Source: Glycera tridactyla (taxonomy: Eukaryota). Taken from it: a stretch of DNA of 64,000 nt. Both the position numbers and the translations under genes were made by a program. The stretch lies in the NCBI GenBank assembly GCA_965644265.1, contig OZ286473.1:63860001-63924000 (forward strand), in the 5' to 3' direction. This document shows positions 1 to 45,448 of this stretch, piece by piece. The notes below the pieces were generated by a model, which was not told the origin of the DNA, did not search any database, and saw only the letters and a list, made by a program, of their open reading frames with translations. The stretch's first letter is position 1; each line of letters opens with the position of its first letter.

Positions 1-1242
1 AGTCTGGCAGTGGGCTGGGTAATCTGCCAACGTACCCATTCTCGACGGAATTTGTCATTTCTTGAAAAAAAATCAGAGCATAACGTTTTTATGATTCACT
101 GGTGTTTGAAGTATCTCGAATCCAGCGTCTGATCACAGGATACTGACGGAATGGATACATCATCAATGCATATCTTCAGACAATACATGATAGAGTGAAG
201 TTTAATGCATATTGAATCATGATATACTGTCTGAATAGGTCATTTCCAGCATATATCAAATATACAAAACTTGGTTTTGATTGGGGATTGAGTGTTGTCT
301 TCTCAACACAATCAGACAACAATATGACAGCACTTTGGTCAGAATATGTCACTGATGTATGGTTTGAAAACCTTTCTTCTCTTGAGAAGCGAAAAGGACA
401 TTCTAGCTGAAGGGAATCCCATAATCTCATATGAGCTTTCGGTTCACCGCATGATATGGTTGATATATCTCACATTGTGCACTGAGACATGTATACATCT
501 ACTCATTTTTTTACTCTCTACTATATGTTGATTGATTCAGGTGGGTCATTTTCTCATACTTTGCTATGAGGCAAATCATAAGACAGTCATGCATTCTTCG
601 CCACATGATGAATTTGTTGGAGGAGGATACAAGATGAATATTTCGAATGCATGCAGCATTGATACTGAAGCATCGACTTTTGATGAACCAGGGGGATACA
701 TCAGTAACATGGACAAGGGGACGCTGTCTATAACGTCATATTTTCCTCTCTGAGTGGGCAAGGAGCCAGTGTATACATGCAGAGAGAGCCTACAAGCATT
801 GTGGTTGCTGATGCTGTGTATTAGAACTGGGTTGATGACACCCGGGAGACGGTTGGCCTATTCATTGCCATCAAGCAGCGATCAGCAACAAGGAGATGGA
901 CATTAATTATGACAGATTGCAAGAGGGAGAGAGAGGGAGATGATGAGCGAGGAGGTGAAGAAGGAGTGAGCAGAAGGCTAAAGGGAAAAAAAGGAAGCTG
1001 GAGATGATGGGTAAGGAAGAAGAAGTAGAGGTAGAGGGACAAGCTGACTGACAATCAATTGGATAGAGAAATGGACATCTATCTGGACAGAAAAAAGAGA
1101 TGAAGTTACATGTGTGATTTAGAGGCCTGTGAGGCGTCTGTCTTGTCAAGACCGGGCAAAATCGTCATCTACCCTTCACAGAGTGCAACATCTGAATCCA
1201 ATCAGGCAACCTAGATGGGAGAGGTGGAGAGATTTACCAACC

Positions 1243-1395
1243 GATAGATAGATGGATAGATGGATGAATAGATGGATGGATGGATGGATGGATGGATTGA
1301 TTGATGGATTGATGCATGAATGGATTGGTGGATGAATAGATGAATAGATGAAATTGATGGATTGATTGATGGATGGATGGATGGATGGATGGATG
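1243..1395. repeat. (GATG/GATA/GATT)n compound microsatellite (also 42413-42565)
   Basis: Direct reading. Confidence 0.95.
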
Positions 1396-3329
1396 AAGAC
1401 AGGTAGACAAGTGGACTGGGGAAGGAGGGTGGGGGCTGAGAAGGAGGGGGACGCAAAATTAGTAAAGAGAAAGATGAGGTCAAAGCAGTTAGAGGTAAAT
1501 GATGCAGAGGGACAGTGAAAGCAAAAGACGAAGCAGAAGAGTGAGTTTGGGGGAAAGAAGGAGAGAGAACGAGGAACGGGATGAAAAGAGAGAGAGCTTA
1601 GCCAGATACATTTGCCGTAGATATCGAATTATAGATATCCCTCATCTCTATCACTGATAAGCTTATACTGCGGTTTCTAAGTGGGCGAACGAGCTTCTTC
1701 AATTCATGAACACATGTAATTTAGCAGAAAGTCGCAATCTTTCCTGAACTGAAGGTGCTTTTCAGCATTGCTTATTGGTTTCTAGTGTTCCTGTATCATG
1801 AATTAGATTGAATTTGATTCCGCTGAAATGGACCCTCCATTATCTCTGCCAGGCAGAGCTCGCCTCTCCCTCCATAGCATGAGATGCTATCATCAAATTT
1901 CATGTCTTGGGACATCGACCCAGCGTCCACACAAGTCTTCTGCTTTCAATCATCAAAGTAGTGACATCTGATTGATGTCTTAATCAGTGAGGATTCAGCC
2001 CAACTCCGCTGTGAGATGGTTTGACAAGAATATCCACTAAGAATAGTAGCTCTAGTCACTCTATATTGCCTATCAGGCAGTTTTGTTACGTGACTTATAT
2101 TTCGTGTAATGGAAGAATGAGATCTGGAAATGAAGAGGTTTTCTCATGGTGTGATGAAGGTCACTTTTGCGAATAAGCTGTTTGCGTGGTCTCCAAGAAA
2201 AGTTTCTGCCACTTGAGCTCGGAATATGAGTTATTCAACATAGAGACATCGCATTGTATTGTATTGTATTGTATCACAACGAACATAAGAATAGAAAAAC
2301 CATCCAAAATAGAAGATATAATCGAGGTGATATCAGAAACTATGTCGAATATAGTCTTGTCGATAACATATTCATTAATCTGTGAGAAGCGAATTTTATA
2401 GCTGAAAGCAGAGGGAGCATATTTACAGTCTTGAAAAACAAATGGACCGGGGAAATATGAAAAGTTGTTGTTTACTGGAAACGGATGGCATTATTTTTTC
2501 AGCATTGATAGCAGAGCAATACGACATACAGAAGATTGCTTAAACCCAATTAGATGATTTGACTGCAAATGACACTTCATCAATCTGTTTTTTAGAACAG
2601 CTATCCTGGGCTCTGTAAAGGCATATTGATCAGCTGAGAAGTCACCAGGGGGCGATGTTGTTGTTTTAACTGAAGGTATATAGCTACAGAAAGTCAATGA
2701 TACAACTAGTTCCGATAATAGCCTCAGCACTGAACATGGTTAGGGTATTTTCTGACTCCACTACCAATCTGGGATTTTTTTGGAGTTGTGATTGTTATCA
2801 TTCGTGATAACCAGTGAATACACCAGTATCCGAGAGGCGGAGAATCCATGGGACTCAGTCGAAAATGTTCTGTCACCAGAATCATGGATTGAACCCAGAA
2901 TCATTGCTTTAATTCATTATTACTATCACAACATGGTGACTACAGATCATAACATGAATCAATATCTCCGTTTGTATATCATAGCTCATCTATATGGGCC
3001 TGGAGGCCTAGTTTATCTCGCCGGCTTCCTTCAAGACCTTTCGATCTGGTTCTGGGGGAACTACACGTGATCCAAAAATACGTTGGACTCAATGTTACCT
3101 ACATTGTAAGTCAATCCGCTGGCCTTTTTGACCCAAGGGAAACATTCTGCCTGAAAAGTTTTACAGAGATGACAATTGGTAGAGAATATAACTGAGTTGG
3201 AGTTTATGTCTGGTTCAACAGTGATGTATATCCATCCAGTTGCAAGTGATAAGAAATCATGTAATATGAATTCATAGATTGTCAGACTACACAAAAAAGT
3301 CATCAAAGGAAAGTACATTTTGTGAGATC

Positions 3330-3577
3330 GAGAAAAGGGGGGATCAAGGAAGGAATAAGGAGAAGGAGAAGAAGAGAAAGAATAAGCAGGAGTAGAAGTT
3401 TGGGAAGCAGAAGAGAGAGAAGAAAGAGAGGACGGAGAAGAAGAAGAAGAAGAAGAAGAAGAAGAAGAAGAAGAAGAAGAAGAATGCATGGACTGAATGT
3501 GAATTTTATTCCTGACATGTAGCTACTACTCTATACGCCTCTTGGATAGAGGAAGTGATGATGATGATGATGATGAC

Positions 3578-3623
<46 letters not shown>
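3330..3623. repeat. (GAA)n tract followed by (GAT)n microsatellite (shorter in copy 2, ~44500-44775)
   Basis: Pure GAA run ~3435-3484; GAT run 3556-3623. Confidence 0.95.
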
Positions 3624-4212
3624 GCATTCATGCTGAATGACAGTAGACCCTCTGGACATTTCAATGATAATGAGAATGATTATATTGATTTCCTCGTGGA
3701 TATGGGGTGCCTACCAATATCATCCAGCTAGGCAGGCATACAATCAGGCATATAATCAGGCCAGGTAGCTGACAATCACATGGTTGATTGAAACTTGTAC
3801 TACTACCCTGCAGGCCTATGAGAGACAACAGGCAAACAGTCAAAAGTAATATTGCCTAGTTTCTGCCACTTGACAGTGAACAAGGATGACGTCTAAGTCT
3901 GGTTAGGCTAGCATTCAATCAGGCTAAGGTGTTGACAATCACACGGGAAATTAGAGCTGGTAGTACAACCTTGCCGACAAGCACGCGTCTAGACGCCAAA
4001 TGTCAACAGCAATATTGGTTCACTTCACCAACACAAACCTTTTCTCACTGACAAAAGTTTGCAGCCCTTGTCATCATCACGTTCCCGACATTGAATGCAG
4101 AGTACATCTTGAATGAAATGCTTGGTCTGATCGGATTCTTTATCATGGTTGTATGATGAAATCACTAGGTCCCTGTCTGCTACCAGGAGTTATGCCTATA
4201 AGACGATTGATT
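3624..4212 (+). repeat. ~600-bp dispersed repeat, inverted paralog of 21770-22960 (also at ~44776-45365)
   Basis: The reverse complement aligns to 21770-21998 plus 22610-22960, e.g. GATTTCATCATACAACCA..ATCCGATCAGAC.AAGCATTTCATTCAAG.TGTACTCTGCATTCAATGTCGGGAA and GGTTGTACTACCAGCTCTAATTTCCC. Confidence 0.9.
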
Positions 4213-4213
4213 G

Positions 4214-4242
4214 ATCATCATCATCATCTTCATAATCATCAC

Positions 4243-4293
<51 letters not shown>

Positions 4294-4307
4294 AATCATC
4301 ATCATCT
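4214..4307. repeat. (CAT)n microsatellite (also ~45366-45462)
   Basis: Direct reading. Confidence 0.95.
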
Positions 4308-5737
4308 TCAGTAGCTGTAGCGAAATGATAGGCAATCAAATGGCGTTCCAGGAATGATGGATCATTTCTTCAATTACAACAATAGGAAGACCTATCTAAG
4401 CAACGACTCTTTGCCATACGGCTCGGCCATGAGGATGAATCAATATTTGTATAACAACAGGAAATAGCACTTTTTCAGCAACTGATCATCAATCCCTATT
4501 TTCAGGTGGCCGGCCATTCATTTTTACAGATTGATTACAATGATGATCGATCTTCAATCTGTTCTCCAAAAGATATGGCACATAGATATCGAGACAGAAT
4601 GGAGGGGAAGGCACTGGCTTCGCCAGTATAATCGTAATTCTTCAGCAACAGATTAACACCCTGTCATCTGATTTGCATACCACTTCCTTTTAAATTGATC
4701 CCATCTTAGACACCTTCCTCCATGATTTCATCATCACATATATCCTACCGCATCAACTCATATCATACCACTCTCACATCAACTGATATCATACCAATTT
4801 TCACAGGTTTCTCTTGCATGAGCGGCTGGGGCCTAACCGTGTGCACTCTCATGCCCGATAAAGTTCTCACCACCTTTCTCTTCATCTTTGCCTCGTCGTC
4901 AGTGATCTTCCATTTATATATTTCGAAGGTTCATATCAATGACTAGTGTTCACTCGGATCGTAAAATGGGTCATTTGAAAAAAAGTAGAGATAACAGACA
5001 ATTCGATGGCTTTGCTGATATGATAGATTCATCTCTGTAAGGCAACATTGGAGAGGAATTCCACAGCTACTTATCACCCTTTTCACTCGGTGATCATTCA
5101 TCGATTTATGTTAAGGGTTCAACAAACATAATGACTAATGTTCACTCTCATTTCAAAGTGATATATTTCGTAAGGATCCAGACAAAATGCCAGGCACTAA
5201 TGTCACTTGGCCAAAAGTATCGATTCATCCTAGCATGAGAACAATACACAATTTAGCATATGTCCCTCAATGGGGGTATACAATGTCTTTGTGAGTATGA
5301 TTGATCCATCCTCGAATCACAAAAATGAATGGTGCTTTAACAACGAATCATCTACCATGTTCTTCAGTGAACAGACATGTTTCAGGTCAGAAGAAGGGCA
5401 AGATAATGAACAATACTATGAACTTCCCAATATGATATGCATGCTCATTGTATCGTAACCGAAAAGTCTTTCTTCTATGACAATCTATCATATATTTTCT
5501 TTAGTGATCCATCACAAACTTACATGCTTTTTCAAGAATGAGTGATGCTCACTCTGATATAACAACTAATATATTTGGTCATCAAGGCTGAAAAGGAAGG
5601 CTCAAGACATAAGATTGGGGTTGACAGAGGTGAAGGTTTGAATCCTATATATCTTGAATATATATTGAAACTTTGATGACTCGACCTGGAGAGGTCAAAG
5701 CACATGGTGCTAAGTCAAGATCTTACTAATTCCATCA

Positions 5738-5900
5738 TAGTCCGGGAGCCACATGTCTCTAAGTGCTCAAAAATGGGTTTTCGCCTACTTGGCGAGGTAC
5801 CTGAGGTTTGACGCTCATTTATAGTGTAAAACTATCTCCTGAATCAGGATTTGAGGTGTGTATTGTAAAAAGACCTGGCGAACACATTCATTTTTTATGA
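5738..5900 (+). repeat. Left imperfect terminal inverted repeat of Academ copy 1
   Basis: 14-bp perfect terminus. The 24-bp block TTTCGCCTACTTGGCGAGGTACCT (5779-5802) matches 12679-12702 in reverse at 22/24. Weaker inverted similarity continues to ~5900 versus ~12582. Confidence 0.8.
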
Positions 5901-6632
5901 TGAATACACGTCTCCCCCAAAAAATAGGCAAAATATCATATTTTCATATTATCCACCATCCAAGCCCAGGACACAGACAAAGCTGCTAATTTTGAATGCC
6001 ATTTGCTCCTAGCATATGTATTCAACTGCAGGATGAATAAAAATCTCTTTAAACAGAAAATAGGTAGATCTTTCAGTGAAAATATACAAAAAATAGTGTG
6101 ATTTTTGGCATTTTTTTGTGATATCTCGCATGTTTTATGGTGCTATTCAGCAGTTTTCATGGATAGAGTCAAGATTATTCGTGGATGTGTTCTGTGGAAT
6201 GTACCAATCATGATTCTACTGCAGAATGTTGTTCACATTGTGAGAAAAAATTATGTCAATTTTTTCTTTATTGTGATGACGCAGACCTAACTCTCATTTC
6301 TGAGCAATACATATATTCCAGCAGCAACTGACTATTCATGGCCCATGTCCTACTTTTCATTTTGGGACAGGAGGAGACCTAGCAAGAACCTTCACAAAAG
6401 AATAATTTACCAAGTTTTATTTGCAGGTAAATGATCAGGTATTATAGGAAGACCAGATGTATGATGACAGGGGCGCCAGTAGGATTGCGAGTGAGTCTGA
6501 TCACCCATCCAATCTCCACAGGATTCTTGAAGGCAACTGTGTTGTTCTCATCTGATCAATATTTTTTCTGTATGTTTTCAGTTGTGCTGAATTGAAAATT
6601 GACAGAATCTATGTACAGCTAGATTAAGAACC

Positions 6633-9600
6633 ATGGCATCTCTGTTCCCAAGTCCTAAGAAGAAAGTGACAGTAGTCACAGACTATAGTCGTTGCATCAA
6701 GTGCCAGATACACCAAAGAGATACAAGTGAAGAACTGCACAATGTTTCCCATGCTAGCTACAGAACACTTGTAACTGTCCTGAATGCTCGAAATGATGAT
6801 ACATCAAAGAGACTGCAGGCAGATATCCAGTCAGAAGATGAATTTTTCAGAAAGCATCCAAAGTGGCACAATTCTTGTCGTGGTACCTGGACTACCAAGT
6901 CAAATTTCAATGCAGGTGAACAACAAAGATCATCAGATCAATGTAGATTAACAAGGAGCCAAAGTTATGAATTTGATTTTAAATGTATGTGTATTTTGTG
7001 TGGTGCAGAAAAATTACCTGGAAAGAAGAAACATGAGCGTCTCTCGAGGGTTGAGACTACATCAGTCCAAAAAACGATTTTTGATAATGTGGTGCAATGT
7101 GATGATCAGAAGGTCCGGACAAGAATCATTTCTGATAATGATTGCTCCATTGACATGATTGCAGTTGAGGCACGATATCACAAAACATGTTATTTGAATC
7201 TGATGAAAAAGTCAAAGACCAAAGACTCATCGAAAGATGTCAGTGAGTTCGATGCAGCATTTGAAATGTTAATAAGTGAGATAGAGGACTCATTATATGC
7301 AGGTAAACTGTATCACTTGACATCTGTGACTGACTTATATAGAAATCATTTAGTTACTGTTGGAATGGATGAAGGTAGGGCATCAATATATCGCAATGAT
7401 AACATGAAGAAAAGACTTCAGAGTTATTTTGGTGACAGCATATCATTCATCCCTCAATCTGGGCGATCTTCGGATATTATTTGCCATGCCAAAATGTCTG
7501 CAGCCAATCTCATAAAATCCTGGACTGAACTCCGATGTGATGTTGATGAGAATTATGTCAGATTAGAGAGTGATAATGCTGCTTATGATGAATCTTTTGG
7601 TGATTGTAGTGATGAGTTTGATGCAAAGATGACTTATAGATTCGCCCGAAAACTCAAATCTGACATTGAACAAATGAAGGCAACTTTCCAAAGGACAGAT
7701 ATACAATCATTTGATGTATCATATGAACAAGCATTTGCCATGGTTCCAGCAAGTCTGTATAATCTGATTGTATGTATGTTGTCAGATGTGTCTTGTGATC
7801 AAATAGGTGATAATGGGTGCATTGCCACTGAGCAAAGTCTTCATGAACGAGTGCTCAACCTTGCGCAGATTCTAGTGTATTCCATTTCAGGCTTACATAC
7901 ACCTGAACAGATTGGCTTAGCAGTATATGTCTTCCACAAAACCAGAAGTAAAGATGTCATAACAATGCTTAATCGGGCATGCCTCTGTATCAGCTATGAT
8001 GAGTTACAAAGGGTTCTCTCAACTGTTGCATTGGAAGTCAGTGAGCAGATTGATGATGAAAAAGTGTTTATCCCTCCAAATATAGTGCCAGGACCATTTA
8101 CCCAGTTTGCAATTGATAATCTGGACTTTTCTGAGTGCACACTTGAAGGAAGCAGTATGCATGTTACAAGTATGGTAATGTTCCAGACAGAAACACTGAC
8201 AGGAGGGTCACTTGGCAATGTACCTCTGAAGTTAAGCCGTAAGCGCAGCCTTCGTGGATCATCATGCGCCCTCTCTCTCACATCAGGGGAGCAAATGCGA
8301 GAAGTAAAGAAGGTAAAGCGCCAAGTGATTCCAGGAAAGAATACCGACATGAGTAAGATTCTTCAAAGATATGTGCCTGAAACACCAAATATGAATCTAT
8401 GCTGGAACTTGCTCCGCTTATGTCCAACTAAACTTCTTAAGGTGGAAGTTGACTGTCCTGGGTGGAAGACATTTCAGGCATCTCTGAAACCCAAGCATAG
8501 TCCAGTCACTACAATTGGATACTGTCCCTTTCTGCCGGCATCCCCAACCAACCCTGCAGTTGTAGAGGAGGCACTGAAGATATGCATGGGTGCAAGCAAG
8601 AAACTTGGAATGACCCATACTGTCGTGACACAGGATGAAGCAATATATGAGATCAGCTATACTCTTCGCAACAAGACACCATCTGACTTTCCCGATCTTA
8701 TTCTCAGGCTTGGGGGATTCCACCTACTGATGAACTACCTAGGTGCCATAGGAAAACTGATGCACGGCTCTGGACTCAAAGAACTATTTGTAAATGGCAA
8801 CCTTCTTAAGGATGGGACAGCAGAAAAGGTTCTAGCAGGCAAAGGCTACTATCAGGCTTTGAATGCACATATGGTTGTCTATGAAGCACTACAGGCACTA
8901 CGGTGGGAGGCGTTTGAAGATTGGGTTATTGATCAGAACATCAATACGGACTTTCTGGCTGACATCAATGATCTCATGGTGATACTAGAGAACAGATTCA
9001 AGATAAGAGATGTTGACAGTTGTGAAACAGCTTATCATATTGCAAAGCAGCTTGACCAAGTGAAGCTACTGATGAATCAGTATGATCAGGAGCATGCCAG
9101 TCACAAAACATACCAGCTCTGGATCAACTATCTTGATGTGATTGAGATCCTTCTTTCTTATTTACATGCAGAGCGGGGTGCTGTGTGGTAGGAACATCTC
9201 TCAGCCACTGCACAAATGGCAGAATACATTGCTGCAGCTGACCATATAAAGTACATCAAAACAGTAGTTTGTTACCTACAGGAAATGAGAAATTTGGAAA
9301 ATGAAGTACCTCACATCCATGATGCATTTGAATGTGGTGAGTTTACAGTGAAGAGATCAGCAGGTAACTTCAACTCAATCTGGACTGATATGGCTTTGGA
9401 ATGTTCTCAGAACTGTGACACAAAGGGTCGTTCTGGCCAAGCAGGACTGAAAGGTATCACAATGGATAAGTGGGCCCAAGAAAAATGGTTCAAGACCCTG
9501 CCATTTGCAGCAGCTGTTACAAATTCCATGAAATCAATGCTCCATATAAACAGTCCAGAGGAGTCACATGATTTGGAAAGTAGCAACATGAGAAAGAAGC

Positions 9601-11441
9601 AATATGACCTACGAGATATGGTCCTGGAATCAGTCAAGAAAGGTGAGATAATCAACCCTTTCGCTTTTACAAAGACAGATCTTGTGTCATCAGCTGATGG
9701 AATTGTTGCAACCGAACAGATTGCTGTGGATTTGCTAGATGCCAAAAAACATGGGAGAAAGGCATTGTATGAATTTGTGGATACAGATAAAACTAATAAA
9801 CTGAAGCTTCACACATTCAGTGACATGAAACCCCAGAAGAAGTGTGTCCCAAAATCAGTGAAACTTCTGGTTGCAAATGAAGTGGATACACTGAAACGGC
9901 TTCTGATGGAGATCGGAAGAAGCATGCACACAGTGAATTTGAAAGAGGCCCTCAACTATGAGCTTCAAGGCCACCCCCCAGCTCTTGCATACATAAACTT
10001 GGCAACAAACAATATTGTTCTGAGAAGTGGCAACAAATCATCTCTCCTAACAGTACTCAAACAGAAGTGTGAGCTAGATGAATGGCCTACAAGTATTCAG
10101 GAACCCACAAGGAAGCGTGGCATTATTGTAGACACTATGTCCTTTATCCATGCACATAAGCCATTGAACAATGAGCTTGGGGATTCATATGCCAATCGTT
10201 TGTTCCATGCTTTCATCCACAACACAGAATGTAGTGAAGTTCATCTAGTTGCTGATCGATATGATGGCCTGAGCACTGAAACAGGTGCTGGAAGTGGAAT
10301 AAGTTTGAAAGATGCTAGTGGGTGTCATGATCATAGAGGGCAGTCTGAAATGGTGTACAGTGTCAGTACTGGACATGCCATCAAGAACTGGAACAGTATT
10401 CTTTCCAGTAAGAAGAGTAAGACTCAGCTGGTGCGATACCTATTTGAGCAATGGTCACTCCAGCAAGAATGCATCCCGGAGACGCTGACAGTGACTCTGG
10501 GAGGTGGCTTTGAAGACCGGAAAGAAGTGCGGCTTCTTTGTAATGGAAGCACAAATGCCTTGGAGAGAGATTCTGATGATGAAATCCTCAGAACTTTATC
10601 ATCCACCCATGAAGAAGCAGACACACGCCTGTTCCTTCATTTAGCTGCTTGTGTTCATAATGGCTGTTCACAGGTGATAGTCAAAGCATCAGATACAGAC
10701 ATTGTGGTTATCAGTATATACCTCTACAATCGTCTCTCCTCCAGAGGGTTAGAAGAACTGTATATACACACTAGAGATAGTTTCATCCCAATCCACAAAA
10801 TTGCCCGGGTTCTGAAGACCAATGAAGCCAAGATGTTACCATTAGTCCATGCTTTGAGTGGGTGTGACACAACCAGTTTCTTCTTTGGAAAAGGCAAGAG
10901 AAGTTTTTGGGTGGCAGCTTCCAACCATCAGGCTGAGCTGGGTAGTATCTCCTCTGAAATCGAGGAAGATGGCCTAACTGCTGGGCTAATTGATCGTACA
11001 CTTGCAGTCGCTAAGATGGTCACAGTTGCTGTATATCATCAACAAGATTTCATAAGTCTCAATGAACTTAGACAACATCTTTATGCTAGAACAAAATCAA
11101 TCCAAGCCCTACCACCAACGGATGATGCCTTCCAGCAACATGTATTGCGAGCATTGTTTCAGACCTGTGTATGGGTCAAAGCTATGCAAACACAACCGAC
11201 TCTTCCCTCTCCATTGAATTTTGGATGGCTGATGTTGCCAGTTGGAGTCCAGCCTCTTTTGCTGACCGTAACCTCACTTCCTCCATCATTACAAGGAAGT
11301 CTGTTCTGTAACTGCAAGCAGATGTGTGCTAGAAACTGTCCATGCCATAAGAAACAAATGCCATGTGCAGTGGCTTGCACATGTCGTGGTGATATTGACA
11401 GGTGTTTGCGTATGCAGTTGGTACAAGATGATATTGACTGA
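6633..11441 (+). pseudogene. Academ transposase-XPG nuclease fusion (1602 codons) interrupted by one in-frame TAG at 9189-9191
   Basis: ORFs 6633-9191 and 9216-11441 are in the same frame, and copy 2 has CAG at the stop position. Motifs: NLS-like PKKKV; two CxxC...HxxC motifs (CIKC..WHNSC, CILC..YHKTC); putative catalytic FAID495NLD, TQD668EAIY, GGFH697 and DMALE923; FEN1/XPG-like acidic motifs IVD1167, AD1208RY, HEEAD1330, SD1354TD1356 and GCD1412; C-terminal CNCKQMCARNCPC...CAVACTC...C (9 Cys). Confidence 0.9.
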
Positions 11442-11989
11442 AACAAAATATAGTTTGTATGTATGTATGAATGTATATATGTATGTATTTGTGGCTCACA
11501 TCTCAGTCAACCCATATCTTCCAGGCCCAACAATTAGCCTGAAAAATTCTGATTCTGATACATATGATAAGTCTGATCAGTCAATTGCAATGGGTGGCAT
11601 TCATCGATATGATATCTTGTGTGGGTGCTATCATCATCAAGAAAGGTGTATTTAGTATCCTTGATCAGTGTCTTTGAATGCCTTTTGATATAACATGTAA
11701 GGTTTTCACAAAGATCCATGTTCGAGCTACACATGAAAGACTGGATGGAGAACATAGCTTAGAGAACCATCATAACAAATATTTAACATAGCACTTGAGG
11801 GGAAATGGGCACTACTTAGAATAAATAAGGTAATACATTTTATTTTACACAGGAAAGAATAGAAAATCTAAATCAGTAAGTGAGCCAAGCTATCATATGT
11901 ATCCATAAACTTTCAGAATGTTAAAAGATCAGCAATATTGAAAGCATGGGCAGTATTTGGAGGTGACAATTTCAGGCTTTTGTGACGTC

Positions 11990-12350
11990 GAATATTTGGT
12001 TGCAAGGGGGGTAGGATGGGTCATGAAGGCATAATTGGGAGAAGAAATATGCTGATCAACCCTATTTTTGCATATAGAGAGCCTCTTATCGATATCATGT
12101 TCTGTGTGTAATATCATAGCTATATTGCATGTTTTGGTTGACTTGTAGTGACTTTTGTACTTGATAGACGACAATGCTCGAATTTTTGCTTGCAAGGGGG
12201 GTAGGGGGGCTCATGAGGGCATAATTGGGAGAAAGAATGAACTGACCAAGCCAATTTTTACTGATGGAGAGCCTAGTATTATCATCATGTTTTGTGTGTA
12301 TTATCATAGATGTACTGCTGATTTTGGCTGAGTTGTAGTGACTTTTTTGC
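11990..12350. repeat. Diverged subterminal direct repeat (2 units, 190-bp period) in the Academ 3' arm
   Basis: TGCAAGGGGGGTAGG...GGCATAATTGGGAGA...GAGAGCCT...ATCATGTT.TGTGTGTA.TATCATAG...GTTGTAGTGACTTTT begins at 12001 and again at 12191. Confidence 0.85.
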
Positions 12351-12581
12351 TTTCCAAACGACGATTTTTGTGAAAAAAATCGAGATTTTCTCCCAAATTC
12401 TTGGTGAATTTGCATGGAAAATGTTATCCTATGCATCTGAAAGTATTTTTTTTCTGATTCAACTATATCATTCATGATTGTCATACAACAGAAGGTGAAA
12501 ATATTCACAAGTTTCAAAACTGTATTGGGATACATTACATATATGGGATAATATTGTGAATCTCGAAAAAAACGCAAGTTT

Positions 12582-12732
12582 TTATCAAAACGGAGGTGTT
12601 TGCCACCTTCTTTTTTTATACACAGTCCATATCATGATGCACAAACAGTCCACTTATCATAAAAAAACATCAAAGTTTAGGTACCTTACCAAGTAGGCGA
12701 AACTTAATTTTCACTGGCTGGCTCCCGGACTA
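12582..12732 (-). repeat. Right imperfect terminal inverted repeat of Academ copy 1
   Basis: The reverse complement starts TAGTCCGGGAGCCA...TTTCGCCTACTTGGTAAGGTACCT and aligns to the left end with a ~11-bp indel after the terminal 14 bp. Confidence 0.8.
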
Positions 12733-14502
12733 TCATGACAGGATATTCACAAGACATCCGCAACTATGGTAACAAGGGGGTAGGGCCACGCTTGAGGAAT
12801 ATGAGGCAGCACTTCTATATTGCAGTGTTTTTGTCAGGGTAACTACACGTGAATAGGTGATCCCAGTCCCAAAGGTGATAGCCAATCACATGCTAAAATT
12901 ACAAGGAATGATGATCATAGCTGTTGGAGAGTGAATGGTCTCTCTCAAGGTCAAGAGAGTTCATAACTGAAGACATCAGGTCTGCGATTTCCAAATCTGA
13001 TGCATTCTCGTTCTTCAGGTACTGTGTTATGTTCATAGCATTTTTTCGAACTCGAGTGTCAATCTCAAGCTAGTGACATATACATATAAAGTAATGAACG
13101 TGTATATAAATGAACATCTGTCTGATGTGAGAGCTACTTCATCTCGACAGTATTCCTCATTCTCCATCATCTTATGTTCAGGGCTCGTGGGAGTGTTGCC
13201 AGCAGGTTATGGAACATCCAACTTTCAAAGATCAGAAACACCGGCATACATAACCGAACAATAGCATCTGAGTATCACTGAAATGGGCCACATATAATTG
13301 TAATAGTACTATCTGAAGGCATCTTAAGGTTGGAGTAATTGTGATGGTTAGATTCAAGAGCATTTCTCGAGCTTTCCCCGCACATTTACTGAGTGTCTGC
13401 GTCTGTAACCAGGAATAACCAACACTGCAGAACTAAAAAACTCAGTATCCATGAAGAGCTTACACGTGTCTATACAATTCGGGTATGAGCATACACAATG
13501 ATTCATGGAATGTACCCTATATGATTGTGGTATCTAGAGGCTGTCTGGAAGTGATAACAACTATGGATGATAGGTACAGGTATATCTCTCATGGTCATTT
13601 CGTACACCAACTGAGAGTGTTGATTGATTAATCAACAGTAAAGAAATAAATATCAATTGTGAGTTCACTACTACTTTGAGAGGACCCGAACTTCACCAGG
13701 AGGTAATTGTGATATGTTCACACCTTTCATTGGGAAAAAAGATTGTGATGGTTGAATTCAACGTTATATGGCACATTCACTGATGATCCGAATCGCAATA
13801 AAAAAGGGGAGTAGCATCGCCCTTGGTCTTGGAGGAGGTATTGAACCATCAAGTATTCACTGACAATTATTCATCTCCGTGGCAAAATTTCTAAATCACT
13901 AAGGTACTGTTTCAGTGGGAGATCTTTAGCATGGCTGAAACGGACCCCTTTTGATTTTAATATGTAGAGGATGCCTCAAGGTGATGGTAAGATCCAAGGA
14001 CATCTTTCAAGGTTATCTGGTCAATCCACTGAGGGATCGAACCGAACCAAGAAGGTGAACATCCATTCACCATTGTTTTGTCACAATATGGCACGATTGC
14101 CCACGTATTGCCACGGGGCACCCGATTATCAGGGAAATGGGCTGGGTGTATGGAGTGTATGGAGTGTGAGAAGTTCACTCGGCTGCCAACCAAGATTATC
14201 CAGAATTATGAGCCATTGAGTCAACATGCCAAGTTATTCCACGCAGCCTATTTCTAGCTTCAACAACACCTTGCACCAAGATGTATATACACTAAGTGGG
14301 AAGCACTTGTCGCAATATCAATCTCAAATCAGCATAGATAGATTCCATTTTAGTGTTCTCTCGTCGATGCTGTCGCACCTGTCACTATCGAAATTGTCGA
14401 ATTGTTTTTACTCCTTTGATTCTCATCGTTTTGAATCTTGTATGACATTGTGGTTTTCTGTTGTTCATGCACTGCCAGATCCCTGGACACTTTCATACCC
14501 AT

Positions 14503-14555
14503 AATCATCATCATCATCATCATCATTATCATCATCATTATCATCATCATCATCA
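14503..14555. repeat. (ATC)n microsatellite (also ~55635-55687)
   Basis: Direct reading. Confidence 0.95.
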
Positions 14556-15629
14556 CATTATTTTGCAATACTCTTCCTAACTCACGCTTGATTGACAAAC
14601 GGAAATCGCATGAGAAATGACTGATAACTTACCACAATTGATATACTTCAACAGGGATAACAGGTGGTACGTACCTTGAAACAGAAAGCAGAACCAAGAT
14701 GTGTTATATTTTAGCATCAACACACGAATGTTATACTTCGAAATAGCAAAACCAAAATGGGGTTGGGTCAGGGTGTATTCATGCAGTATGCAGTTTATAT
14801 TGATCTCATGATTTATCTCATCAACAACAAAAATTCTTTCCATGAAACTTCATTCAGGTTTGGTTTGGTTTGGTTGACTGTTTTGACTGATCACAGTCCA
14901 GTACCACTGCCAGAGCCGGAAGGTTCTGATCTTCCCAGTGCTGCTTAGCTATTTATGGGTGACAGGTCTAATCTTGGCAAGGCGCAACCCTCTGCCTGTG
15001 ATTGAATTTTGAACCTCCTGTCTTATGCCTGCATATGTGTGTATGCTGAGGAGGGGTATTGGTGTAGCTGGATTCCGTAGTCACTTATCATAGCACCACT
15101 GCTAACCTAGGACCATTGTTTTCAGATCCCAGATAGGCGCTCACTACATCACCCAGCCCTAGTGGTGTGTAGCTCATGCCTCTTTCCGTGTTTTGAGCTC
15201 AAGATTGGGGGCCCAGACCACTGGTGTAGTCTGTGACTATTAGTGCAGTGTTTGGTCTGCCCATACTGGTACTCTCTGCTTCCTCACATCCTGCCGTGGT
15301 CACCCATAACACAACTAGCTGCAGCTACAGCTGTTCTAAATTTGAGTCAAGTGTGAAGAAGCTACCACTACACCACGCTTTCCTCTACATACAAATATCG
15401 GTGATTGATTGATCTAGGTTTGATATTGATACAGTGAGTAAGTTGATATTGACTTTGTGCTCAACTGAGATGAGGACTTTTCTCTCCCATTAGGATTCAT
15501 TCGAATAGAATTTCGATGAGAACTACATACCTTCCATGAGATGAGAATGATATAAACATATGACTTCTTATTCTGTATTCTATGGTTGTGATTGTCATGT
15601 ACTGAAGTGAGTCAGTGAATGAGTCAATG

Positions 15630-17207
15630 AATGTTCAATGCTTGGATTCGCTGAGATGAGATTGATCAATACTCTAGCCAGAAGTGAGTGAGTGGATGTT
15701 CAATGCTTGGATTCGTTTGGATGAGATTGATAAATACTCTAGCCAGAAGTGAGTGAGTGGATGTTCAATGCTTGGATTCGCTGAGATGAGATTGATAAAT
15801 ACTCTAGCCAGAAGTGAGTGAGTGGATGTTTAATGCTTGGATTCGTTGAGATAGGATTGATAAATACTCTAGCCAGAAGTGGGTGAGTGGATGTTCAATG
15901 CTTGGATTCGCTGAGATGAGATTGATAAATACTCTAGCCAGAAGTGAGTGAGTGGATGTTAAATGCTTGGATTCGCTGAGATGAGATTGATATATACTTT
16001 AGCCAGAAGTGAGTGAGTTGATGTTCAATGCTTGGATTCGTTTGGATGAGATTGATAAATACTCTAGCCAGAAGTGAGTGAGTGGATGTTCAATGCTTGG
16101 ATTCGCTGAGATGAGATTGATAGATACTCTAGCCAGAAGTGAGTGAGTGGATGTTCAATGCTTGGTTTCGCTAAGATGAGATTGATGAATACTCTAGTCA
16201 GCAGTTAGTGAGTGGATGTTCAATGCTTGGATTCGTTAGGATAGGATTGATAAATACTCCAGCCAGAAGTGAGTGAGTGGATGTTCAATGCTTGGATTCG
16301 CTGAGATAAGATTGATGCATACTCTAGTCAGAAGTGAGTGAGTGGATGTTCAATGCTTGGATTCGCTAAGATGAGAATGATAGATACTCTAGCCAGAAGT
16401 GAGTGAGTGGATGTTCAATGCTTGGATTCGTTGAGATAGGATTGATAAATACGCTAGCCAGAAGATAGTGAGTGGATGTTCAATGCTTGGATTCGCTGAG
16501 TTGAGATTGATGAATACACTAGCCAGAAGTGAGTGAGTGGATGTTCAATGCTTGGATTCGCTGAGATGAGATTGATCAATACTCTAGCCAGAAGGCAGTG
16601 AGTGGATGTTCAATGCTTGGATTCGCTGAGATGAGATTGATAAATACGCTAGCCGAAAGTGAGTGAGTGGATATTCAATGCTTGGATTTGGTGAGATAGG
16701 ATTGATAAATACTCTAGCCAGAAGTGAGTGAGTGGATGTTCAATGCTTGGATTCGCTGAGATGGGATTGTTATATACTACAGCCGAAAGTGAGTTAGTAA
16801 ATGTGTCATGTATGGATTCAATCAGATGAGATTGATATATACTACACCCAGCGAATGTTGTATGCTTGTATTCAATGAGGTGAGATTGTTCTATACTACT
16901 TTTAAGAGTAAGATAGTGAATGTTTCCTGCTTGTAGTTGATGAGATGAGGTTGTTCTATGCTACAGTCAGACAGTTGGTGAATGTTCCATGCTATTATTC
17001 GATGGGAGGAATGCGATATATACTAGAGCAAGGAGTGAGTCAGTTGAGGTTCCATACTTGGATTCGATGAGATGAGATTGTTATATGCCATTGCCAGAAA
17101 TGACTGAACGAATGTTGCAAGCTTTGATTCGATGAGATGAGATTGTTATATACTACAGCTAGAAGTGAGTTGGTAAATGTTTCATGCCTGTATTCGATGA
17201 GAACCAC
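15630..17207. repeat. 65-bp tandem repeat array: 18 conserved units plus ~7 degenerate units
   Basis: Consensus TCAATGCTTGGATTCGCTGAGATGAGATTGATAAATACTCTAGCCAGAAGTGAGTGAGTGGATGT. The CTTGGAT anchor recurs at 15641, 15706, 15771 ... 16746 (period 65), then decays to ~17200. Confidence 0.95.
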
Positions 17208-19674
17208 TTTATATGGGGCTTTCATCTTTGGATGCATGAATGATGAAGTATCACAGTCTGACATGGATCTGACATGCCATCAATCTCCATCTCCACTCTG
17301 GTTGCCAAGGTTACAAACCTCCACCAAATCTGGGAACGAAACAAAGGAAACAAGTTGATTACTACATCTATGTCACACCATCACAAAGCCAAGCAAAGCA
17401 ATCATATATGTCCGAGCAATGGTGGATTATGTCGAAGTGAGATTGACAATGGGATGCTGAGGTGGCACGAATTCGACTTGTCAAGCCGCGAAAAGTAATC
17501 CATCAACTGGTTGTCAAGGAGACGCCCTCAAAATCGACACCATGTGGAATATCCTCTATCCTCCATCTTGATGGACCCAACTGCTTATTCGTTTTTTGTC
17601 AAAATATACGGTTCTGAAGTCAAAGAGGTGGTGGAAGAATAGATCATGATTATCAAATGAAAAGGGTGACGTAGGTATCAATACATGAAACATACTCATT
17701 CAGACAGAAAGGCACATGCTATCAAACTCACCTTATTGTGTTGTTCAGACATTGACTAATATACCAAGCTTTCGTTTGGCCTGATTTCCCAGAACAGATG
17801 CAGATCTCGGGCATCCAGGTGCATTTCTCGGGCAATCACTTTTTTTTTCGAATGGGAAATAATGCCTCAGAATTGGATCGTGTTAATTCTTAGCTCATAG
17901 AATCCTAAAGAGTTGACTCTGGTGGAAGAAAATTATATTTCATCTAGAAAGTTGAGCAGTCGGTTAATGAGTACTTTTTTGTCCGATTGTTCATTCTCCT
18001 TATTAAGAATTAAATATATATATATGGAGTTAGGTTATTTTATTGAGGATTCTGATTGAAATTGACTGTCAGAATCCTCACTGAATCACATTAATGTGTT
18101 TCTGTTTTATGTCTGTGCGAAGGTAGAGGTCCCACCGGAATTTGGATGCGCTACCTTTATGGCAAATTGTTTGCTTTATACTATTGGCACAATGTGTGTG
18201 TGTGAGTTTGGGTGAATTAGATCCATCTATGTGGTCACTTCAATACATGGACCACATTTGCTCTCATTTTAGGAAGATTTACACTGGTTGCTTTTGGACA
18301 CCATCTGAATATCAGAAGCTTAGCGGCTGGTATCACAGTTGCGTGTTGCACACTTATCAGTATTTATTGTATGTGATTCATTACCAGATTATGGGTCATA
18401 TCGACTTGTGTATCACCTCAATGTCTGCAGCCAGCAGCGGCTGTCATCTGTCCTCCCTAAGAGCGGACACAGCCTTGCTCCCTGAGTGATGCCACTAATT
18501 TGATAGCTAGCCTCCCACTCCCATAATACCCCTCACAAATAAATCTCGGTAACTAGGAATCCATTCACTGCAGATTGCCCATACGATGGGGACTTGCTCT
18601 GCTGGATTAGATTTGGCTTCGTTACTGCATGTGTCACCGTTGACGTCTCCACTTGTTCTGTATTTAGGTCCGGCTGCCGGTAACATGAACAGAAATAGCA
18701 ACTTACTACATAAACCCCCACTCAACCACGATTATATGAAGCAACTCTTTCTTGTCATAATCGCATGGACGATTCAGTAATTATCTATATACTTTTCAGA
18801 TCGACTAAATCTTATTTGTGCCAAGACATTATATTTTATTCATGTCAAGTAAATGTATCTCGTTTGAGCCAGTTAACTGAATTTTATTCGAAGTATGTCT
18901 GCCGACTTCCATTGAAATGCATTTGATTGCCTGAAATGTATATGAATTTGTTGCATTTGAAGGAAGTGTTTATTGTTGTCATGCGACAATTAGTGATATT
19001 GTCCCATTCTTTCGCCTATTGCTACGATTGGATGGTTTTTTTTTATTGCTTCAGGTGCGAACGTCAGTCGGTAATTAAGAAGAGGTGGTATTGACAACAA
19101 TCGAACTTGCAGAACGCCGCCTGTTGCCCCTCGACCTCGAATGTTCTGTGGCGAATCAGCTCTGGCATGCTCGCATCATGTGACCAGGGCGGTATGTACT
19201 GATACAGAAAACCACATGTGCTACAACCCTTCGGTTTATCATCCGCTTCCGAACCAACACAGTAGCAGGTGATTACATACACGCTAGACCCGATATCGGA
19301 TGAAAAGATGAATGGTTATGCATATGAAGTATGCAACAGATCTGTCTGATACTTATTTATTCCACACTTATAGATATAATTTATGCATTTGCAGGTTTCT
19401 GTGACCGAGTATTTTCAATCTCAGTGGTGCGGACGCCCATATGACATGCATTTCTGGATCTGTCCATTGATAGATTACCGCCGTTTGGGCACTGTCATCA
19501 AAATTTCAAAAATATCTGGAATCGACTGGAGAATATTCTTTGATATTTGTATCCAATCAGCTGTGTCATAATAAATCTATAATGGTAATTCAGTGAATTA
19601 ATCCCTCCATTAATCCATCCATCCAGCAAGCTATCCATCTAGCCATCCATCATCTCTGCAAGTCTGTTCCTCTG

Positions 19675-22960: not shown

Positions 22961-25064
22961 TCCTCCTCCTCGTCCCCTTCTCCTTTTCCGCCTTCTCCTC
23001 ATCCTCCTCCTCCCCCTCCTCATCCACATNNNNNNNNNNNNNNNNNNNNNNNNNNNNNNNNNNNNNNNNNNNNNNNNNNNNNNNNNNNNNNNNNNNNNNN
23101 NNNNNNNNNNNNNNNNNNNNNNNNNNNNNNNNNNNNNNNNNNNNNNNNNNNNNNNNNNNNNNNNNNNNNNNNNNNNNNNNNNNNNNNNNNNNNNNNNNGT
23201 GTCCGTCTGTGTGTCTGTCTGTTTGGTTCTTTTCGTTTCTATCTTTATCACTCTCGTCTTGTCTTATGTTATTCAATCCTCTCCTATCTCTTAGTCCTCT
23301 CTCTCATCTTCAGCTTCCCTCACCCTCATCTCATCTCCCCCTCTGTGTTACCTCACTCTTTGTTTCTTTTTTTGTTCTCTCCCTTCCCTCAACCCCCCCC
23401 CCCCCTCTCCCCATTATGGCCTGCTCCGGTGTGGATCTAGCGCCAGGGACCAAGGGTCACTCCGGAATTGACTGGCAAAATTCTCCCTCTGCTGCAAATG
23501 TGCCCTCTACACGATTCATAAATAGAAACTCAGAATCTTAATATAGAAATCCATAGGACGAACAACCAATGATAACATTCCCACCTTGGAACTGATCACA
23601 TAAATTAAAACACATTACGGAGATATCATGTTTAGACATAGGAGATAAATAGCAGAGTTGCGTGGGCTAATCACTGGTAAGTAATTGCCAGGGATTAGAG
23701 AAGAATTAGAAAAGTGATTGTCTTCATTTTCTCTAATTAGGAATTAGACAAGAGATTGCCCCTTATAGGTACTCACCAGTGCTACGTGAAAGGCTCTGCT
23801 CATATAATCAAGATGGCGAGAGAAATGTCTAATTTGACATTTACCTTCAGAAATTGGAATAATCTCTTCATGTGAATCCTTTTGTTTGTAAAAAGTTTAT
23901 TATATAAGCATGGTTGACAAAAGAGTCATTTTAAAAGCTTACATAGCCAGTCAAAATCAGTCACACAACACACATGGGAAAGAAACATCCGAATTCATAT
24001 AGGAACAGTAGTAATATAAACTGTACACTATTGAGGCACCCCAATGGGTGAAGAGACACGTTTGTGTGTGACAAGGACATTGATTCAAATTCGACCACGA
24101 AAATTATGGCTGTGCACCTGGGCAAATGATGCTTCTGGTTCACCAATGCCATCTACCACTATATTCTAGGCATTAAATGAGAAGGGAGAAAAGACTAGTT
24201 CTTATTCCACTCTTCAGTCTTAAAGATTGGATGCAAGACAATACAATACGGCACATAGGAATTAATGCCCACCAAAAACAGAGTCAGCGTCTCACTATTC
24301 AATGCAAAAAGTTTTGATTGCTGGTAATAGAGACAACCAATCTCTTTTACATTGATGAGATATAGGTTCAAAAGAGAGCTAGAACTACAAAAGCCTCAGT
24401 ATATGGTGCAATCGTGTGATGTTTGTTGCATAAACAACTAATTTCATCTACACAAATGCATGAGCAAGTTCATGGGAGTGAGAACACTCTCACTTCATGA
24501 CGCATTCAGGTAAGAAATTTGTGGGCAGAAATCTTCCTGGTAAGTACCTTCGAGTAACTTGTCATTATTCATATGCGCACTCATAGGGGCGCCATTATAC
24601 ACACAACATTCAAATCATAAACATGTCCATCAGACCAGGGTACAGCCTAGTGGGCACCATCAGGAACAGTTGCACAGTGAGAATTTTCACATACATTTAC
24701 ATATACCTATAAACGCCTTAATATTCACAATCATAGACAAACACGCCAAACTGGAGCGTAGTCATCAAGTCACAGGCAACTAGAATATAACTGTGGTTTT
24801 GGAACAAAACAATACAAACAAATAAACCCAATGAACCAAATGAATACTATCAGCAGCAGAACACAGTCAAAACACAGCCAAATCCAAACATGCTTCTGAG
24901 TTGCCAGTTGAATTTTGTAGACCAGGACAAACAAACGAGAAACAAGGTAAGACAAAAATAGCTTTCAAGATCCATAGCCAAATTCACCAACGCAAGTGGG
25001 ATTAACAAGAAGAAGTATATTCATATACATAGTGTGAAGACCAGTCATAATTGGCATGGACTGC

Positions 25065-25945
25065 TCATAGACCACGAAGAATTTTGAAATACTTCTTAGC
25101 CCTCCTCTTGAAAAGCTGAATGGATTCACTTGATTTGACATCACACGGAAGACTATTCCATATCAATATCCCATGTGAACGAAGACTCGCCTTGGCAAAT
25201 TTTGTGCGGAATTTTGGGACATAAAGATTGTTTCGCTCACTCTGCCTCGTAACAAGAGAACTGACATTGCTAGTTAGTGAAAAAAAAGGATCAGGTAGGT
25301 GCCAACAGTTTACGTATAAGTTGTTAAAAACTTGGATCGCCACATTGCGATTACAGATATCTTGCAGATATTCAACGCCAAGACTGATATGTAGCTGGGT
25401 GGCAGAGATAATCCCATGTAGCCCAGACACTACACGCAGGCAGTTTTTCTGGGCGACCTGTAATTTTTTCAATGGCGCTACATTCTCCCCATCATAAATA
25501 AAATCAAAATACAAAAACAGTGGGTGAACGAGTGCATTGTAGAGTTGCAGCGCCCTATTATTGGACAGACATTGGCGTATGCATCGAAGAGCATTCATTC
25601 TGACATATACTCTTCTACATAGCATGTTTGCATGTTTCTCGAAAACCAGATGTTCATCTAACTGGATTCCAAGATATTTATACGAGGGTACTCTTTCAAT
25701 TTCTCCACCATCAAATTTGATTGAAGAACAGCGTATAGCAGAGGTTTGTGGTCTGGTACCAAAGAATACACAGTTTGACTTCACCACATTTAGGGTTAAT
25801 CTCATGTCAGAAAACCATTGATTGACTTTGCTCAGATCGTGTTTTAACTTATCTACAATTTCACCCTCAGAATTGGCTATGCAGTAAATAGCTGTATCAT
25901 CCGCATAAAGCAGGACTTTACAATGTTCAAGAAGAAGAGAATGTC
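25065..25945 (-). mobile_element. 5'-truncated non-LTR retrotransposon (CR1/L2 group): C-terminal reverse transcriptase and ORF2 tail
   Basis: Minus-strand frame contains HCKVLLYADDTAIY, LTLNVVKS, YKYLGIQLDEHLVFEKH, LYNALVHP and NLYVPKFRT...WNSLP, which are typical of CR1/L2-group ORF2. Similarity stops just upstream of the YADD motif. The 3' end of the element is not defined. Confidence 0.9.
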
Positions 25946-33905: not shown

Positions 33906-34823
33906 NNNNNNNNNNNNNNNNNNNNNNNNNNNNNNNNNNNNNNNNNNNNNNNNNNNNNNNNNNNNNNNNNNNNNNNNNNNNNNNNNNNNNNNNNNNNNNN
34001 NNNNNNNNNNNNNNNNNNNNNNNNNNNNNNNNNNNNNNNNNNNNNNNNNNNNNNNNNNNNNNNNNNNNNNNNNNNNNNNNNNNNNNNNNNNNNNNNNNNN
34101 NNNNNNNNNNNNNNNNNNNNNNNNNNNNNNNNNNNNNNNNNNNNNNNNNNNNNNNNNNNNNNNNNNNNNNNNNNNNNNNNNNNNNNNNNNNNNNNNNNNN
34201 NNNNNNNNNNNNNNNNNNNNNNNNNNNNNNNNNNNNNNNNNNNNNNNNNNNNNNNNNNNNNNNNNNNNNNNNNNNNNNNNNNNNNNNNNNNNNNNNNNNN
34301 NNNNNNNNNNNNNNNNNNNNNNNNNNNNNNNNNNNNNNNNNNNNNNNNNNNNNNNNNNNNNNNNNNNNNNNNNNNNNNNNNNNNNNNNNNNNNNNNNNNN
34401 NNNNNNNNNNNNNNNNNNNNNNNNNNNNNNNNNNNNNNNNNNNNNNNNNNNNNNNNNNNNNNNNNNNNNNNNNNNNNNNNNNNNNNNNNNNNNNNNNNNN
34501 NNNNNNNNNNNNNNNNNNNNNNNNNNNNNNNNNNNNNNNNNNNNNNNNNNNNNNNNNNNNNNNNNNNNNNNNNNNNNNNNNNNNNNNNNNNNNNNNNNNN
34601 NNNNNNNNNNNNNNNNNNNNNNNNNNNNNNNNNNNNNNNNNNNNNNNNNNNNNNNNNNNNNNNNNNNNNNNNNNNNNNNNNNNNNNNNNNNNNNNNNNNN
34701 NNNNNNNNNNNNNNNNNNNNNNNNNNNNNNNNNNNNNNNNNNNNNNNNNNNNNNNNNNNNNNNNNNNNNNNNNNNNNNNNNNNNNNNNNNNNNNNNNNNN
34801 NNNNNNNNNNNNNNNNNNNNNNN
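33906..34823. other. Assembly gap or masked run (918 N). Other N-runs: 23030-23198, 37430-38051, 40272-40402, 62504-62837, 63558-63697
   Basis: Runs of N; most abut simple-repeat tracts. Confidence 1.
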
Positions 34824-35610: not shown

Positions 35611-35991
35611 AGGAACTCATTCAATCCCTAATACCTGAATAAACTCTTACTCAATATGTCACAGAATCCATGCAGATTGATAGAATAAGCATGAGATTAC
35701 TTCTGAAAGCCAACGCTCAACATCGGTATGGCATCTCGGTAAGTTGATATTCACTGAGTGGTGGATTAAAGCTTTCAATCTCAAGATTAATGCCATCAAT
35801 CAAGCGCTGATTACAGAACGCTTAATCCTTCCTCAAACATCATGCATCATTCGCAGCAGGGTTGCCATGGTGAACCACATCTCACTCCTTCTATGGACCT
35901 TGGTTCGACCTTTTGTTGGATATACTCTGCTTCGAAATGTCATCAAATCACCCTCCATATATGCCAATCCCCCAAGTACCATGTCCCGTGT

Positions 35992-44729: not shown

Positions 44730-44775
<46 letters not shown>

Positions 44776-45394: not shown

Positions 45395-45448
<54 letters not shown>

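Follow-up and report, generated by a model that had tools for sequence, protein, structure and literature searches.

A decayed transposon of probable AcademX type in Glycera tridactyla, encoding a DDE transposase core joined to a predicted FEN-like nuclease domain

Here, we describe a transposon insertion in a 64,000-nucleotide stretch of the genome of Glycera tridactyla (GenBank assembly GCA_965644265.1, contig OZ286473.1, positions 63,860,001 to 63,924,000 of the forward strand). We refer to this whole stretch as the window, and positions are given within it unless stated otherwise. The segment at 5738-12732 is a genuine insertion of ca. 7 kb, well preserved and nearly full length, with terminal inverted repeats (TIRs) at its ends, a 3-bp target-site duplication (TSD) outside them, and a single gene between them. 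The encoded protein contains, in order, a Cys/His-rich N-terminal region, a DDE core, a FEN/EXO1/XPG-like nuclease domain, and a CXC finger. We regard it as very probable that the segment is one AcademX-type cut-and-paste transposon insertion, autonomous in design and now inactivated; this assignment was made by hallmarks. The coordinates of the features are collected in Table 1.

An earlier note on this DNA had proposed exact 14-bp TAG..CTA termini, a TCA TSD, and a frame of 1602 codons with only a single stop, and all of these were recovered. The left terminus, TAGTCCGGGAGCCA, recurs at the right end as its exact reverse complement, and TCA stands directly outside both ends. When up to 2 mismatches were allowed, TAGTCCGGGAGCCA had 4 matches in the 64-kb window, compared with 0.08 expected by chance. 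The left boundary was also seen in public data. Four public runs, from two studies and with two organism labels, supplied contigs that were aligned to window positions 5500-11499 and matched the element at 90 to 99% identity; none extended over the flank at 5500-5699, and precisely at 5737/5738 they passed into two flanks of different, unrelated sequence. The transposon end at 5738 is exact to the base. Because the contigs of other runs leave the element into different flanks, the family is multicopy, with other insertion sites, and one of the public runs contains an internally deleted derivative in which 7923 is joined to 9770.

Three related elements (42 to 47% protein identity) were located on long contigs of other assemblies, and all of them have 3-bp TSDs. 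Together with the window element they share the terminal consensus TAGTCYRGRAxCCA. Each 3-bp TSD match has a chance of 1 in 64, and four independent matches establish a 3-bp TSD for the group. No termini were recognized on the short contigs L001 and L003-L005 (the element ends are missing or there are no clear TIRs), and a TAGTCY terminus was sought on contig L007 and not found. On the latter contig, a long terminal repeat retrotransposon pol gene (RVT_1, RNase H, and integrase; positions 1-2675) adjoins a related Academ-like gene. The related element L002 has inverted repeats of ca. 650 bp that start ca. 45 bp inside its ends, whereas the window element combines TIRs of 14 bp with a short subterminal repeat; terminal architecture therefore varies within the group.

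The frame occupies 6633-11441 of the plus strand (1602 codons plus the terminal stop) and is interrupted only by the TAG at codon 853; no other open reading frame (ORF) of at least 160 amino acids is present on the coding strand inside the element. Both ORF pieces align back to back across this stop in 47 relatives, and such collinear alignment in intact relatives identifies the frame as one gene. Although a word search returned just a few relatives, at 42 to 47% identity, an exhaustive profile search returned 52,829 representatives at E ≤ 0.001, of which 4,302 remained at E ≤ 1e-30. The relatives include many fragments and also many uninterrupted proteins of 1437 to 1691 amino acids with the same collinear architecture. 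Neighbors in the Atlas are eukaryotic (Cnidaria, Arthropoda, and Mollusca) and carry the name Tesmin/TSO1-like CXC, in agreement with the C-terminal finger. Two close relatives, P0002 and P0006, are filed in NCBI under a Sedimenticola sp. metagenome-assembled genome; these are almost certainly eukaryotic host contigs that were binned by mistake. Sequence searches of PDB gave no match for the protein or for its whole-length profile (A1), and tblastn against phage records likewise gave none.

Curated domain models contributed little. Pfam found nothing in either ORF piece, nothing meaningful in the N-terminal 400 amino acids, and no helicase domain in the window protein. In some relatives only, Pfam matched DUF6589 to the transposase core and TCR/CXC to the C-terminal finger. 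The earlier note had looked to the Pfam XPG, PIN, and CXC models for corroboration. The CXC part was borne out in relative P0032, where TCR/CXC (PF03638) passes the cutoff, but not in the window copy; the XPG and PIN parts were not, at E ≤ 1 with the window protein.

As the transposase core of the window copy is broken by the stop, we modeled the corresponding region of an intact relative (P0012, residues 440-1070; 42% identical), with a predicted local distance difference test score (pLDDT) of 89.9. In this model, the equivalents of D495, D668, and E923 lie on strand E102-112 (strand 1), just after strand E278-282 (strand 4), and in helix H533-546, respectively, and ca. 220 helical residues are accommodated between strand 5 and the Glu-bearing helix. 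All three residues are at least 90% conserved among 85 sequences, as are N496, D498, H697, and D919 (window numbering). The conserved H697 belongs to a GGFH motif that follows strand 5 and has Gly in place of the C or D of the C/DxxH signature known from the hAT, P, MuDR, and Kolobok transposases (PMC9587614). Structural comparison gave a consistent picture. Realignment of the Foldseek list ranked the P element transposase first (Z 10.3, 364 residues aligned), followed by Hermes (8.8), Transib (8.0), ISCth4 (7.9), and RAG1 (6.6), with everything thereafter at 4.1 or less. An exhaustive structural search of 48,161 chains likewise returned the P element (10.3), Hermes (8.4), ISCth4 (8.3), Tn5 (8.1), retroviral integrases (ca. 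7), and RAG1 (6.4), with Mos1, Mu, TnsB, and IstA at Z 5 to 6 and almost nothing else reaching Z 5. On the evidence of the model, the core around D495, D668, and E923 is an RNase H-fold DDE transposase carrying an insertion domain.

The nuclease domain was modeled directly. The AlphaFold model of residues 1115-1525 has a mean pLDDT of 94.1 and a predicted template modeling score of 0.93, and its sole weak stretch (domain residues 100-120) bears K1226 and R1235, as would be expected of a flexible arch. Nearly all of the top 50 Foldseek matches belong to the FEN superfamily (bacterial and T5 FEN, FEN1, EXO1, Rad2/XPG, XRN1/2, and T4 RNase H), with probabilities of 0.8 to 1.0 but E-values of only ca. 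1e-3. By VIA-align, the closest structure is EXO1 (Z 15.4; 257 residues, 3.8 Å, chain residues 2-311), followed by FEN1 (14.0), Rad2/XPG (ca. 12), and GEN1 and T5 FEN (both 11.7). In an alignment of 95 domain sequences (21 to 55% identity), the carboxylates D1167, D1330, and D1354 are invariant, and D1208, E1327, E1328, D1356, and D1412 are at least 90% conserved. Also invariant are the basic residues K1135, K1226, R1235, and K1422, of which K1226 and R1235 are arch residues, and the domain contains a helix-two-turn-helix motif, GCDTTS..GKGK. Invariant K1135 (10035-10037) lies where the structural alignment to FEN1 and EXO1 begins (their residue 2); it might act as a stand-in for the free N terminus of the cellular enzymes, the domain here being internal.

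At the level of sequence, the similarity is much fainter. The best match of the nuclease profile (A2) among PDB sequences was human EXO1, and this was weak (E = 0.07). The alignment places VVfDrY..K..R.rR on LVFDGC..KK..R.RR around EXO1 D78 (DRYD) and lHalTGcDttS..GkGK on MCILSGCDYLS..GIGL around EXO1 D225. A profile of the central HEEADTR...DTD region (A4) yielded chance matches only (1ml8, UmuD), leaving E1328, D1330, D1354, and D1356 without a mapping to FEN1 by sequence, and the Pfam models XPG_N and XPG_I had no match at E ≤ 1 in the window protein or 10 relatives. The lack of a match to curated models, together with the E-value of 0.07 to EXO1, indicates a very divergent branch that is recognizable by structure.

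These results bear on the central proposal of the earlier note, namely, a DDE-like transposase fused to an XPG/FEN1 nuclease with its full acidic motif set. Both halves held up. For the transposase, the triad is at least 90% conserved and canonically placed in the P0012 model, and the structural matches are almost all DDE transposases or integrases; for the nuclease, the fold is given by the model (Z 15.4 to 11.7), and seven carboxylates, predicted to bind metal, are conserved in 95 relatives. The accompanying residue-by-residue mapping of D1167, D1208, E1328, D1330, D1354, D1356, and D1412 onto the seven acidic residues of the FEN1 site fared less evenly; all seven are invariant or at least 90% conserved, but sequence alignment covers two sites only, and these to EXO1 rather than FEN1. 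The remaining five assignments are made on order, secondary-structure position, and range-level structural alignment. Fold, motif order, and conservation support the prediction that this family possesses a catalytically competent FEN-like enzyme.

Table 1. Coordinates of the element, its duplicated copy, and three related elements (the related elements are numbered on their own contigs)
Feature	Position	Strand	Remarks
Left target-site duplication TCA	5735-5737	.	Identical TCA beyond right end
5' TIR TAGTCCGGGAGCCA, 14 bp	5738-5751	+	Exact match to reverse complement at other end
Left subterminal inverted repeat	5770-5822	+	53 nucleotides, 75% complementary; partner 12659-12711
ORF part 1, codons 1-852	6633-9188	+	Cys/His-rich N-terminal region and first two thirds of DDE core
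RNase H-fold DDE core with helical insertion domain (model), ca. residues 440-1010	7950-9662	+	
D495	8115-8117	+	
D668	8634-8636	+	
H697 (GxxH)	8721-8723	+	
In-frame TAG, codon 853	9189-9191	+	CAG in duplicated copy; Q or S in relatives
ORF part 2, codons 854-1602 and terminal stop	9192-11441	+	
E923	9399-9401	+	
FEN/EXO1/XPG-like 5' nuclease domain, residues 1134-1525	10032-11207	+	Structure model, conservation
Nine-Cys CXC-type finger, C-terminal (residues 1559-1586)	11307-11390	+	
190-bp unit, 1.9 copies, 3' noncoding part	11988-12346	.	
Right subterminal inverted repeat	12659-12711	-	Partner of 5770-5822
3' TIR, exact reverse complement of TAGTCCGGGAGCCA	12719-12732	-	
Right target-site duplication TCA	12733-12735	.	
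Second copy of same insertion, 6972 bp	46893-53864	+	Termini 46893-46906 and 53851-53864, same TCA
Related element L002	2691-12542		Left TAGTCCGGAACCCA, right TAGTCCAGGACCCA; TSD CAA
Related element L006	7252-15027		Left TAGTCTGGAATCCA, right TAGTCCGGAATCCA; TSD TTT
Related element L008	4510-13248		TAGTCCAGGAGCCA at both ends; TSD TAT

The window carries the element twice. Self-comparison showed that positions 1-18946 are repeated at 41171-60407 and that both element copies have the same flanks; substitution divergence between the blocks is 0.63% within the element and 0.45% and 0.52% in its left and right flanks, respectively. We considered whether the second copy might be an independent insertion, but this is ruled out by the identical flanks, the same TCA, and the shared segmental duplication. 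As part of that duplication, the second copy cannot be counted as a separate observation of the TSD. The arrangement could reflect a true tandem duplication, in which the one insertion was copied along with the surrounding locus, or the assembly of two haplotypes in series. The duplicated blocks (ca. 19 kb each) lie 41 kb apart, with N gaps between them at 23030-23198, 33906-34823, 37430-38051, and 40272-40402. A BLAST identity of 98.1% over the whole block had raised the possibility of gene conversion between the copies, which we rejected given the uniform divergence of 0.45 to 0.63%; the BLAST figure is due to a 65-bp tandem array. This array (ca. 19 to 25 units, 82 to 90% matches) is found at 15620-17202 and 56752-58659, with copy numbers that differ between the blocks.

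Both copies are decaying. They differ by 44 substitutions and 3 indels, and 20 of the 29 coding substitutions are nonsynonymous; this majority, and a substitution rate that is equal inside and outside the ORF, point to neutral decay of the two copies. The second copy has CAG at codon 853 but stops at codons 463 and 797, and it has lost 9 bp in frame (amino acids 1479-1481) and 13 bp of the 5' noncoding part. When changes were polarized with six to ten relatives, the first copy was found to carry the derived missense changes G450C and R1234H at positions conserved in the family, with further derived missense changes at E346, K603, V836, N1254, and C1303. Repair of the stop alone would thus not restore the ancestral form of the first copy, and the description of it in the earlier note as a ready candidate for reviving was too strong, given these lesions beyond the stop and the dozens of intact natural relatives in public data.

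Elsewhere in the window, a 313-amino-acid ORF on the minus strand (25065-26006) contains a reverse transcriptase fragment (Pfam RVT_1, E = 4.5e-7) and is probably a retroelement remnant. The region at 34001-38000, around two N gaps, is AT rich (GC content of 0.27 to 0.29) and has overlapping long ORFs on both strands that are probably low-complexity artifacts.

How firmly can the element be placed? Kojima is said to have described, in 2020, Academ families that encode one protein with both a transposase and an XPG nuclease. To our knowledge, Academ is among the least studied of the DNA transposon superfamilies and AcademX has never been studied experimentally; in the literature library that we searched, no paper names Academ, XPG, and transposase together. 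Academ is a recognized DDE superfamily without a Pfam model (PMC5751038). Its AcademX members combine a TSD of 3 to 4 bp with a nuclease, and its AcademH members a TSD of 9 to 10 bp with a helicase, a difference in TSD that Kojima links to the possession of a nuclease or a helicase (as given in PMC10045372). The window element displays the AcademX hallmarks: a single protein of ca. 1500 amino acids with a DDE transposase and an XPG-type nuclease, a 3-bp TSD, and no helicase. Its length of ca. 7 kb also fits Academ, since Academ elements, which are abundant in bivalves, rank there with the longest DNA transposons (mean, 5.6 kb) (PMC10294476).

Several points weigh against this assignment. No Pfam XPG, PIN, or transposase model matches the window protein, even at E ≤ 1, and Academ membership was set by hallmarks. 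The nuclease domain is internal, starting at about residue 1134 of 1602, and not at the protein N terminus. In FEN1, EXO1, XPG, and GEN1, the nuclease domain starts at the N terminus, and a free N terminus lies beside the active site; the active site here may therefore differ in detail from theirs. Finally, judging by its sequence (the stop at codon 853, G450C, and R1234H), the window copy cannot be active.

One could instead assign the element to a different DDE superfamily, possibly one without a name, and regard the presence of a FEN-like domain as chance, given that DUF6589 is the sole Pfam link of the relatives to a transposase core and that Academ was assigned by hallmarks. However, we saw neither the CACTA ends nor the TWA targets that characterize other superfamilies with 3-bp TSDs. 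Every reported AcademX hallmark that we examined is present (PMC10045372), and we consider a non-Academ superfamily very improbable. That the locus is a domesticated or cellular gene, as its long open frame and strongly conserved catalytic residues might suggest, is scarcely credible in view of the TIRs and TSD, the copies with other flanks in other runs, the stops and neutral decay, the absence of introns, and the tens of thousands of relatives, many of them fragmentary.

For an element of the AcademX type, the question becomes what a flap endonuclease might do inside a transposase. The element inserted once, into a TCA, and the locus was duplicated later, with neutral decay of both copies. 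In the scheme that we propose for transposition, the DDE core would bind the TAGTCCGGGAGCCA ends and expose 3'-OH ends, which would be joined to target phosphates 3 bp apart, giving rise to the 3-bp duplication. The fused nuclease would cut or trim the 5' (nontransferred) strand at the transposon ends. Such a division of labor, as in TnsA and TnsB of Tn7, would permit excision without a hairpin or a second hydrolysis by the DDE site. Among the roles that we considered, we tentatively favor this TnsA-like one at the 5' strand. In Academ, TSD length goes with the accessory enzyme, which suggests an accessory domain that belongs to the transpososome and not a late repair helper.

Alternatively, the nuclease may act after strand transfer, trimming 5' flaps or processing short gaps, either where the element has integrated or at the donor site that it has left. 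Such flap trimming and gap processing are the ordinary jobs of FEN1, and the fold and motif set found here are those of flap- and gap-processing enzymes. In addition, TSD length follows the accessory enzyme (nuclease, 3 to 4 bp; helicase, 9 to 10 bp) (PMC10045372), which points to target joining. However, host FEN1 and EXO1 normally carry out this repair for other transposons, and the strict conservation of a private copy would then be hard to explain; on balance, we think this role rather unlikely.

Another possibility is that the DDE core makes flank hairpins, as do hAT, Transib, and RAG1, and that the fused nuclease opens or resolves them. The best structural match speaks against this, being the P element transposase, which works without hairpins, and we know of no FEN-family enzyme that opens hairpins. 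We consider the idea improbable, even though the closest structural matches include Hermes, Transib, and RAG1, with the same helical insertion domain, and the conserved GxxH (H697) occupies the position of C/DxxH in hAT, P, MuDR, and Kolobok (PMC9587614).

The proposal of a TnsA-like role for the nuclease can be extended to a general, albeit speculative, view of the element as a two-nuclease cut-and-paste system. The DDE site would serve the 3' ends only, the FEN-like domain would be a dedicated 5'-strand cutter, and the accessory enzyme would set the stagger (3 to 4 versus 9 to 10 bp). We consider this extended view possible but doubtful. If it is true, eukaryotes would have a fourth way of dealing with the second strand, one convergent with TnsA/TnsB of Tn7.

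The specimen in the window is not special in itself: it is dead, it has been duplicated with its locus, intact relatives are plentiful, and elements of its kind were already known. What our analysis adds is confident models in which the accessory domain is a genuine enzyme of the FEN/EXO1 kind, its predicted active site complete and strictly conserved; the placement of the transposase core among DDE enzymes like those of P, hAT, and Transib/RAG1; and a conserved terminal motif plus a 3-bp TSD across four independent insertions. What a flap endonuclease does inside a transposase has thereby become a concrete, testable question.

Among known systems, the element most resembles the AcademX lineage (Kapitonov and Jurka 2010 and Kojima 2020, as cited in PMC10045372 and PMC5751038), with which it shares one very large protein combining a DDE transposase and an XPG-type nuclease, TIRs, a 3-bp TSD, the lack of a helicase, and an animal host; no feature that we compared sets it apart from this lineage. 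With FEN1, EXO1, XPG (Rad2), and GEN1 the nuclease domain shares its fold (Z 15.4 to 11.7; ca. 250 residues aligned over chain residues 2-311), the order of seven carboxylates, a flexible arch in which one Lys and one Arg are invariant, and a GCD motif of the helix-two-turn-helix type. It differs from them in its low identity (11 to 15%) and in being internal, with ca. 20 extra residues and two short strands ahead of it. The P element, hAT (Hermes), and Transib/RAG1 transposases have in common with the window protein an RNase H-fold DDE core in which an all-helical insertion separates strand 5 from the Glu helix (300 to 364 residues aligned). Identity to these is only ca. 10%, however; they have C/DxxH, whereas the window protein has GxxH, and they lack a fused second nuclease. 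Their TSDs are 8, 8, and 5 bp, respectively, as opposed to the 3 bp seen here. Finally, what would be held in common with Tn7 TnsA/TnsB is the proposed logic alone, in which a DDE enzyme serves the 3' ends and a second nuclease the 5' ends; TnsA is a separate protein of restriction-enzyme fold and has no homology to the nuclease described here, so that the likeness between the two systems is one that we infer.

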